Shown one piece after another: positions 55,335-56,381 of a stretch of 64,000 nucleotides of DNA. This stretch comes from Octopus sinensis (lineage: Eukaryota). The position numbers and the translations under genes were made by a program. The number at the start of each line of letters is the position of its first letter. Position 1 is the stretch's first letter. The notes beneath the pieces are model-generated. The model had not been told where the DNA came from. It ran no database searches and saw only the letters and a list, made by a program, of their open reading frames with translations. Location: the NCBI RefSeq assembly GCF_006345805.1, contig NC_043005.1, positions 89,776,001-89,840,000 on the forward strand, in the 5' to 3' direction.

Positions 55335-56381
55335 AGTAATAGGTTGGGGGATATAAAGAATCACAGATATAAAGGGTCACAGGTTAAAGGATCACAGATA
55401 TAAAGGCTTTAATGGTTCGTGGAAATAAACGTTTTAAAAGTCTAGGGCTTGTGGACAAAGTAAATTTAAAAGTAGATATGAGATAGGTAGGGAGATGGAT
55501 AGACAACTGAGTTGATAGACAGACAGATAGATAGATAGACAGACAGATAGATAGATAGATAGACAAACTTGTGTCTAAATTATAACATTTGAATACAAAG
55601 AAACAGAAAAAGGAAAAGAAAGTAAGAAGTGGGGGAAGGGTAACGCTACAGAAGATGTAACTAAATTTAAATGAAAGATCAAAGAAACCTATTTTGTATA
55701 TTTTCCTAGGTGTGCTATTCCTGGTTACGACAATGACACGTATAAAATCCAAAGTGAAATCCATGAAGAACTGATCAACGAATATATTCCAAAGAGTGAG
55801 GATGAAGGGGAGGTGGTTTATGAAAAATGTTTGATATATTTCAATAGCACTGAAAATGGAAATCGAACGACACAGAAGTGCAGTTCTTGGGTTTATGATA
55901 AAACCAACACACACACCTCAATCACCAGTCAGGTAAGGTTATTTTGCAGCTCGCACGCCACATACAAGGTAATCTATATATTCTTCTATCTACCTACCAT
56001 ACTATCTATCTATCTATCTATCTATCTATCTATCTATCTATCTATCTATCTATCTATCTATCTATCTATCTATCTATCTATCTCTCTCTCTCTCTATCTA
56101 TCTATCTATCTATCTATCTATCTATCTATCTATCTATCTATCTATCTATCTATCTATCTATCTATCTATCTGTCTGTCTATCTATCTATCTGTCTGTCTA
56201 TCAACTCAGTTGTCTATCCATCTCCCTACCTATCTCATATCTACTTTTAAATTTACTTTGTCCACAAGCCCTAGACTTTTAAAACGTTTATTTCCACGAA
56301 CCATTAAAGCCTTTATATCTGTGATCCTTTAACCTGTGACCCTTTATATCTGTGATTCTTTATATCCCCCAACCTATTACT
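55335..56381. repeat. Perfect 229-bp inverted repeat (55335-55563 / 56153-56381) flanking SLC22 exon 2
   Basis: Base-by-base comparison found no mismatch. Confidence 0.92.
55710..55932 (+). CDS. SLC22: SLC22-family transporter paralog B, coding exon 2 (large extracellular loop)
   Basis: ttttcctag| acceptor, CAG|gtaag donor, 223 nt; (R)CAIPGYDNDTYKI...CSSWVYDKTNTHTSITSQ with sequons NDT, NST, NRT; in phase with exons 1 and 3. Confidence 0.92.

Follow-up and report, generated by a model that had tools for sequence, protein, structure and literature searches.

A perfect 229-bp inverted repeat around a coding exon of an SLC22-family transporter gene in Octopus sinensis: a candidate young, local inverted duplication

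The question raised by this locus is how a single coding exon came to lie between two exact reverse complements of one another, and what such an arrangement would mean for the transcripts of the gene. It was addressed in a window of 64,000 nucleotides of Octopus sinensis DNA, in which all positions are counted from the first letter, and by comparison with L001, the contig (42 kb) that encodes the predicted protein P0001 in Octopus vulgaris (GCA_951406725.2, OX597823.1). The two arms and the segments that they bracket are as follows.

55335 to 55563, plus strand: left arm, in intron 1; exact reverse complement of 56153-56381 and, by the comparison given below, the inverted, derived copy of 229 nt from intron 2
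55710 to 55932, plus strand: exon 2 of an SLC22-family transporter gene; 223 nt, phase 2 in and phase 0 out, with AG/GT sites kept in L001
55933 to 56152, plus strand: start of intron 2; about 70 nt conserved, then an (ATCT)n array reaching into the right arm
56153 to 56381, plus strand: right arm, in intron 2; the ancestral source by the same comparison, beginning within the (ATCT)n array and passing into unique intron sequence

The arm pair was returned by a repeat finder as 229 nt of 100% complementarity with a spacing of 589 nt, and the reverse-complement identity was verified again by a script, according to which the match halts sharply at both boundaries, with no extension either outward or inward. 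When the arm was compared by BLAST with the 64-kb window, its positions 1-146 (55335-55480) occurred at these two places only, and an exact match of 146 nt of unique sequence excludes chance as the source of the pairing. The inner 83-85 nt or so of the arm (55481-55563) consist of GATA/GACA-type microsatellite, for which BLAST gave further partial matches in the window. The (ATCT)n array at 55972-56202, which carries a (CT)6 interruption, was scored by a tandem repeat finder at period 4 and 57.8 copies; the left arm holds 12.5 GATA-type units, and the array of the right arm goes on for about 180 nt further. Rfam and tRNA scans of 53000-61500 produced only sub-threshold microsatellite matches, and the arms themselves were empty. 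The left arm ends 146 nt before the acceptor of exon 2 (55564-55709), and the right arm starts 220 nt after its donor (55933-56152). The first-pass annotation, made from the letters alone, had proposed the coordinates of the arms, their perfect identity, their content of unique sequence and both of these distances; repeat finder, script and BLAST upheld the first three, and the intervals just given reproduce the distances.

Exon 2 is translated in a single stop-free frame (CAIPGYDNDTY...TSITSQ) between canonical splice sites, with tttcctag/G as acceptor and CAG/gtaagg as donor, and its peptide was 93% identical to P0001 in a protein search. The earlier assignment of this exon and its splice sites was thereby sustained, by direct reading, by the frame shared with exons 1 and 3 and by conservation in O. 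vulgaris. The neighbouring exons of the gene, termed here paralog B, are located as follows.

24618 to 24760, plus strand: exon 1 of paralog B; Met start, ending with 2 nt of a codon; found by tblastn with P0001 at 89.6% identity; donor CAG/gtaagt
60804 to 60906, plus strand: exon 3; LNLVCDKAIL...GILSD, the start of TM2; homolog at L001 26744-26845; aligns to SLC22 structures

Exons 1-3, which are all that the window holds of the gene, include the hallmarks of the SLC22 family, namely TM1, a large extracellular loop rich in Cys and N-glycosylation sites, and TM2 with the LVC motif. The joined exons matched the OCTN2, URAT1 and OAT1 chains in a phmmer search with E values of 2e-8 to 6e-7 over residues 2-156, and this match to SLC22 structures places exon 2 in the large extracellular loop between TM1 and TM2. 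Pfam gave no match on the exon 1-3 fragment, and no candidates came out of a protein search in which the exon 1 peptide was the query. The other homologs, P0002 and P0003, are encoded on distant contigs, and their alignment is limited to the start of the exon.

A second gene of the family, paralog A, is represented in the window by its first exon only (978-835, minus strand), which is divergent to paralog B; the two SLC22 first exons, 835-978 (minus) and 24618-24760 (plus), thus lie head to head, 23.6 kb apart. The paralogs are 96.5% identical in the first exon and 89.8% identical over a 649-bp stretch that takes in promoter, exon and the beginning of the intron. Over the latter stretch each matches L001 at 82-84%, so that the paralogs are nearer to each other than to O. 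vulgaris; a recent duplication, or gene conversion, is the suggested cause. In the exons, the codon changes relative to O. vulgaris include as many non-synonymous as synonymous ones, or more. Exon 3 (60804-60905 versus L001 26744-26845) differs by nine non-synonymous and two synonymous codons at 88% nucleotide identity, and is thus less conserved than exon 2 (95%). The exon 3 changes suggest that, in these paralogs, selection on the beginning of TM2 is relaxed or diversifying.

Elsewhere in the window, repeats of several other kinds were observed. A satellite with a 490-bp unit occupies 4592-9705 (10.4 units, about 98% alike) and is preceded by a 699-bp inverted block of the same satellite (3892-4590), the left edge of which abuts a (TA)n run. 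The resulting arms, 3892-4490 and 4592-5190 (599 bp), are 99.8% complementary around a 101-bp spacer, and the inverted block is about equally near (99.3-99.8%) to several units, with no special closeness to the adjacent one. The satellite at 3892-9705 was considered as a second fresh foldback and rejected, the 101-bp spacer and the equal nearness of several units pointing to an orientation switch within the array. A 59-bp tandem repeat (10638-11505; 14.7 copies, 88% matching) carries long, repetitive open frames on the minus strand, and a 340-bp direct repeat (12620-12959 and 13125-13462) is 99.4% identical between copies 505 bp apart. The block at 13500-19000 is GC-rich, reaching 0.59 GC versus about 0.37 elsewhere, with a C-over-G skew of about -0.5; its long stop-free frames are of low complexity and rich in Pro, Thr and His, and it grades into about 1.4 kb of degenerate (AC)n (17377-18804). 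Within intron 1, the segments 26567-27018 and 50381-50832 form a 452-bp inverted pair (97.6%, 23 kb apart), the members of which are probably copies of a transposable element. Decayed LINE-type reverse-transcriptase fragments occur in intron 1 and after exon 3 (44300-47600, 51100-51500 and 62700-63500), with the following domains.

46082 to 46411: RVT_1
51101 to 51505: zf-RVT
62711 to 63487: RVT_1

Which of the two arms came first was decided by the O. vulgaris locus. Collinearity between the window and L001 sets in shortly before exon 2 and holds across intron 2 and exon 3 at 80-92% identity, with BLAST homology beginning at window position 55676. L001 contains one copy of the arm sequence (23061-23278, 85% identity), at the position of the right arm, and the right-arm homology carries on downstream (window 56165-56567 to L001 23061-23472). 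BLAST found no counterpart of the left arm upstream of exon 2 in L001, and no cross-exon inverted repeat comparable to that of the window was found there. Since L001 has only the right-arm copy, together with its flanking homology, it is the right arm that is ancestral, and the left arm that is derived; the earlier suggestion that the left arm is the newer copy accordingly stands, on the strength of an O. vulgaris locus that carries the right-arm copy alone in a conserved context. On sequence comparison L001 may be a co-ortholog rather than a strict ortholog, which leaves the polarity of copying unaffected. Intron 1 is otherwise unalignable with O. vulgaris, the insertion site included.

The inner boundary of the arm homolog has a structure of its own in O. 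vulgaris, where (TA)n, (GA)n and (GATA)20 run directly into the (CTAT/CTGT)n of the arm homolog (L001 22855-23085). An independent inverted microsatellite junction, with (GATA)20 abutting (CTAT/CTGT)n at L001 22976-23085, is therefore present at the same boundary, and suggests that the site may be prone to strand switching. In the window, the interval between exon 2 and the arm is taken up by one long (ATCT)n with its (CT)6 island (55972-56202), and about 150 nt of unique O. vulgaris sequence are absent; these differences show that this interval was remodelled in one lineage or in both.

The insertion site of the left arm is composed of the following segments.

55021 to 55205, minus strand: (CA/TA)n microsatellite tail of a SINE; similar tails precede other SINE copies
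55206 to 55334 (to 55334/6), minus strand: body of the tRNA-derived SINE, about 79% identical to the consensus of the other copies in the window
55564 to 55646, plus strand: orphan segment of 83 nt, between the left arm and ancestral sequence
55647 to 55709, plus strand: ancestral end of intron 1; a remnant of about 26 nt of an element (55647-55672), then the conserved 3' splice region (55676-55709)

The SINE family has at least six further copies in the window, five of which were used for alignment. The 5' head of the SINE next to the arm is short by about 33 nt, and it is exactly at this truncation that the left arm begins; the earlier observation that the SINE is truncated where the left arm begins was in this way supported both by alignment with the other copies and by a test for the head. 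It was considered whether the arm had inserted cleanly into a SINE that was then intact, as the CAAAC that follows the arm resembles the SINE head; the 13/32 anchored identities, versus 79% in the body, gave no support. A continuation of the SINE after the arm was likewise unconvincing, the local alignment score being no better than that of shuffles. With the SINE consensus as the ancestor, microhomology at the outer junction amounts to at most 2 nt (AG). No target-site duplication was found at the outer ends, where the flanks ...GGTTGAGAA and GTAAATTAAG share nothing. For the 83-nt orphan (55564-55646), no source was found above chance on either strand of the window or of L001, and it may represent a second filler segment.

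The segment downstream of the orphan records a deletion. Positions 55647-55672 include a 20-nt exact match to the 3' end of an element (L001 24979-24998) and are collinear with L001 22355-22368, and in O. vulgaris the 615-bp element is complete (L001 21754-22368) and ends 27 nt upstream of exon 2. Since O. vulgaris has the full element and the window its last 26 nt or so, the common ancestor must have had the element, of which some 590 bp disappeared in the lineage of the window. It is exactly at the junction of this deletion that the left arm and the orphan are placed. As a separate observation, the element of about 615 bp is present in O. vulgaris as two direct copies (L001 21754-22368 and 24376-24986, 92% identical), with exon 2 and 1.7 kb of intron 2 between them; at the corresponding site of the window (around 58172-58191) the second copy is missing. 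Such direct repeats could allow the deletion of exon 2 by unequal recombination in O. vulgaris.

Taken as a whole, we favour the reading, to which we assign a probability of roughly 55%, that the repeat is a young, lineage-specific local inverted duplication, produced by a deletion with templated inverted filler and forming an RNA duplex that loops the exon. A break or stalled fork in intron 1 would have come under repair, with the loss of about 590 bp or more of ancestral sequence; the growing DNA end would have jumped across to the other strand at a point 0.6-0.8 kb downstream, where 229 nt of intron 2 would have been copied in reverse until synthesis halted inside the (ATCT)n microsatellite; the 83 nt would have been added next, and the end joined up again about 60 nt before the exon 2 acceptor. 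The simplest reading is that deletion, inverted copy and orphan are the product of one complex repair or replication event. The arms differ at 0 of 229 nt, versus a divergence of 12-15% from O. vulgaris, and the lack of any difference indicates that the left-arm copy is young. On these figures the event would belong to the most recent 10% or so of the period after the O. vulgaris split, unless gene conversion has acted.

Mutations of related kinds are known. Templated filler insertions arise at repaired breaks through MMBIR or polymerase-theta end joining. In the four-point model for template-switch mutations (Loytynoja & Goldman 2017), perfect inverted repeats are made in one step (PMC5453318). 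Like such mutations, the octopus insert is a perfect inverted copy of a nearby sequence, and it is absent from the outgroup, with which the insertion site itself cannot be aligned. The reported events are mostly of tens of bp, copied from within about 100 bp, whereas the octopus tract measures 229 nt and was taken from 0.6-0.8 kb away, in excess of the typical short-range tracts. The octopus case also adds a deletion of at least 590 bp and the 83-nt orphan, so that one switch-and-return does not account for all of the differences from the ancestor; the orphan is left unexplained by such a model, and the candidate microhomology at the outer junction, at most 2 nt, may speak against a template switch.

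The chief alternative, which we regard as less probable though quite possible, is that the left arm, perhaps together with the orphan, is an assembly artefact that stems from gap filling, a chimeric read or a mis-join near repeats and is absent from the genome. Polishing with reads from the true right arm would then yield 100% identity, and the identity of the arms is exactly 100%; moreover, both ends of the insert lie at repeats (SINE and microsatellite), an 83-nt orphan of no detectable source stands next to the arm, and the flanking ancestral sequence is missing. Oxford Nanopore (ONT) sequencing of genomic DNA does yield foldback and chimeric reads with junctions rich in simple repeats, at about 0.6% of reads, and such reads are near-absent in HiFi data (PMC12870357). 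These foldback artefacts are symmetrical and rarely recurrent and have one junction per read (PMC12870357), whereas the structure seen here would need two false junctions in a single consensus path. Neither junction, furthermore, offers a long overlap that could mislead an overlap or k-mer assembler, the outer one having at most 2 nt in common, and (GATA)n is not self-complementary. The window is free of N and its microsatellites of more than 200 bp are fully resolved, consistent with a long-read assembly. When the exact products of three ORFs across or within the arms were looked up in the public assembly collection, no record matched, and no proteins from the species of the window appeared in the homolog search.

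Two further origins would involve mobile elements. A LINE reverse transcriptase could have jumped from SINE RNA, 33 nt before the SINE 5' end, onto the sense-strand RNA or DNA of intron 2 and copied 229 nt, the identity of the arms being maintained later by gene conversion. The polarity fits this account, the order in the plus-strand cDNA being tail, SINE body and left arm, with plus-sense intron 2 as the template, read 3' to 5' from 56381 to 56153; the start of the arm also coincides precisely with the 5' truncation of the SINE. The SINE body, however, is about 21% diverged from its consensus and hence old, yet the arms show 0/229 differences, and the combination of an old SINE with identical arms means that gene conversion between short arms would have to be sustained; the loss of the 615-bp element and the 83-nt orphan are left unexplained as well. 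We consider such a retrotransposition by-product very unlikely. That the arms are the terminal inverted repeats of a DNA transposon or foldback element, which carried or captured the exon, is scarcely credible. Long perfect terminal repeats around a short interior do resemble foldback or MITE-like elements, and octopus introns do hold inverted repeats derived from transposable elements (e.g., L001 18318-18778), but the inner ends of the arms are a microsatellite breakpoint rather than an element boundary. This candidate was rejected because the outer ends have no target-site duplication, because the unique arm sequence has no other copies (it occurs at this locus only in the 64-kb window and once in the 42 kb of L001), and because in O. 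vulgaris both exon and right arm are found in their places while the left arm is missing.

If the local inverted duplication is real, as we favour, its consequences would be expressed at the level of RNA. The two arms of the pre-mRNA would form a perfect 229-bp duplex, closing a loop of 589 nt that contains exon 2 with its splice sites. In a computed fold of 55300-56420 the arms were paired end to end, with a minimum free energy of -511.9 kcal/mol. The arm pair was also the sole significant inverted match between intron 1 and intron 2 (low-complexity filter on; part of the gene in the window), so that no pairing competes with the arm duplex. In this part of the gene, then, the flanking introns are reverse-complementary, the arms lie near the AG and GT sites and cross-exon pairing is favoured, as is characteristic of exons prone to circular RNA (circRNA) formation. 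The duplex would set the donor of exon 2 beside its own acceptor, favouring a 223-nt circular RNA, and would also loop out exon 2, favouring the joining of exon 1 to exon 3 and a null transcript; back-splicing and/or exon skipping should thus be favoured by the geometry of the arms. The predicted junctions are as follows.

55932 to 55710, back-splice junction (predicted): ...CCTCAATCACCAGTCAG joined to GTGTGCTATTCCTGGTTACG...
Exon 1 to exon 3, skip junction (predicted): ...GACTTAGATTACAG joined to CTGAATCTAGTTTGCG...

When the join of exon 1 (...GATTACAG) to exon 3 (CTGAATC...) was computed, it read ...DLDYS-stop, an immediate truncation, and the frameshift anticipated from the length of exon 2 was in this manner reproduced as Ser-stop. 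The predicted circle contains no long open frame besides that of the exon itself. The arm duplex is further predicted to suit ADAR hyper-editing ideally, long perfect duplexes being a classic target of promiscuous ADAR editing, and possibly to be a substrate for Dicer. ADAR activity is high in coleoids, and in a multi-tissue survey of octopus, circRNAs were low overall, which was ascribed to ADAR (PMC9699675). The low level of circRNAs in octopus tempers the prediction of a circle, and skipping or editing may prevail over circularisation.

The arrangement may be compared with systems in which complementary introns act on splicing. Intronic reverse-complementary matches that drive circularisation include the inverted Alu pairs of human and the DNAREP1 repeats at Drosophila laccase2, and minimal repeats of 30-40 nt suffice as circularising pairs in ZKSCAN1-type reporters. 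The part played by intronic complementary matches in exon circularisation was reportedly described by Jeck 2013, Zhang 2014, Liang & Wilusz 2014 and Ivanov 2015. As in the Alu and DNAREP1-type pairs, complementary sequences are present in both flanking introns near canonical splice sites, pairing across the exon is predicted, and ADAR would be expected to antagonise it. Unlike those pairs, the octopus arms are a locus-specific duplication of unique intron sequence and not dispersed repeats; they are perfect over 229 nt, far longer and cleaner than is typical. A second parallel is the circular transcript of mouse Sry, said to have been described by Capel 1993 and Dubin 1995, in which a single exon reportedly lies between long, near-identical, locus-specific inverted repeats. 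The arms of mouse Sry are required for circularisation. The octopus locus resembles Sry in that what encloses the single exon is not a pair of transposons but an inverted duplication, near-perfect and specific to the locus. The arms of Sry, however, measure tens of kb and are ancient in Mus, whereas those of octopus are young and of 229 nt, and the octopus exon, unlike that of Sry, is internal to a multi-exon coding gene, so that skipping with a frameshift would also be possible. Of the studies named above, Ivanov 2015 is cited in the octopus survey (PMC9699675).

For the gene itself, which is one of two recent paralogs, the likeliest net effect is an allele that is neutral or shows a mild loss of function, and not an adaptation; with non-synonymous changes equal to or in excess of synonymous ones and a close paralog at hand, a neutral or mildly deleterious allele is the most economical expectation. 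The opposing proposal, that the repeat is maintained by selection as a regulatory device, either for ADAR- or helicase-dependent output of the transporter or for a functional circRNA, appears quite improbable. The geometry is near-optimal for circularisation, with 146 and 220 nt to the splice sites and no competing pairing, and the high ADAR activity of coleoids (PMC9699675) would suit such a device. Against this, the repeat is absent from O. vulgaris and is too young for conservation to show, the many non-synonymous changes and the close paralog fit relaxed constraint, and the circle has no long open frame beyond that of the exon. A specific form of the proposal, which we hold to be highly improbable, is a genuine repeat that works as an ADAR-gated switch of splicing for the SLC22 paralog, silencing it at low ADAR or helicase activity and restoring the linear mRNA at high ADAR. 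At low activity exon 2 would be skipped (Ser-stop) or circularised, and where ADAR is high, for example in coleoid nervous tissue, hyper-editing would melt the duplex and bring the coding mRNA back; were this true, the repeat would be a newborn cis element tying the expression of a transporter to the editing machinery of cephalopods. In a DNA-level variant of the switch, recombination between the arms would flip exon 2 as an on/off polymorphism.

Both the architecture, intronic complementarity across an exon, and the class of mutation, templated inverted insertion, are already known, and the form found here is unusually clean and young. If the left arm should prove to be an artefact, the locus would serve as an example of a small inverted false duplication that misleads predictions of circRNAs and RNA editing. 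If the repeat is real, it would document a templated inverted insertion of 229 nt, at the large end of the template-switch spectrum, and would constitute a very clean natural experiment in which one datable mutation placed a perfect duplex of 229 bp across a coding exon; ADAR is exceptionally active in this animal, and a close paralog and a sister-lineage locus, neither of which has the duplex, can be used as controls. Such a locus could show the effect of one repeat pair in vivo on linear and circular splicing and on exon skipping, and the extent to which ADAR counteracts it.
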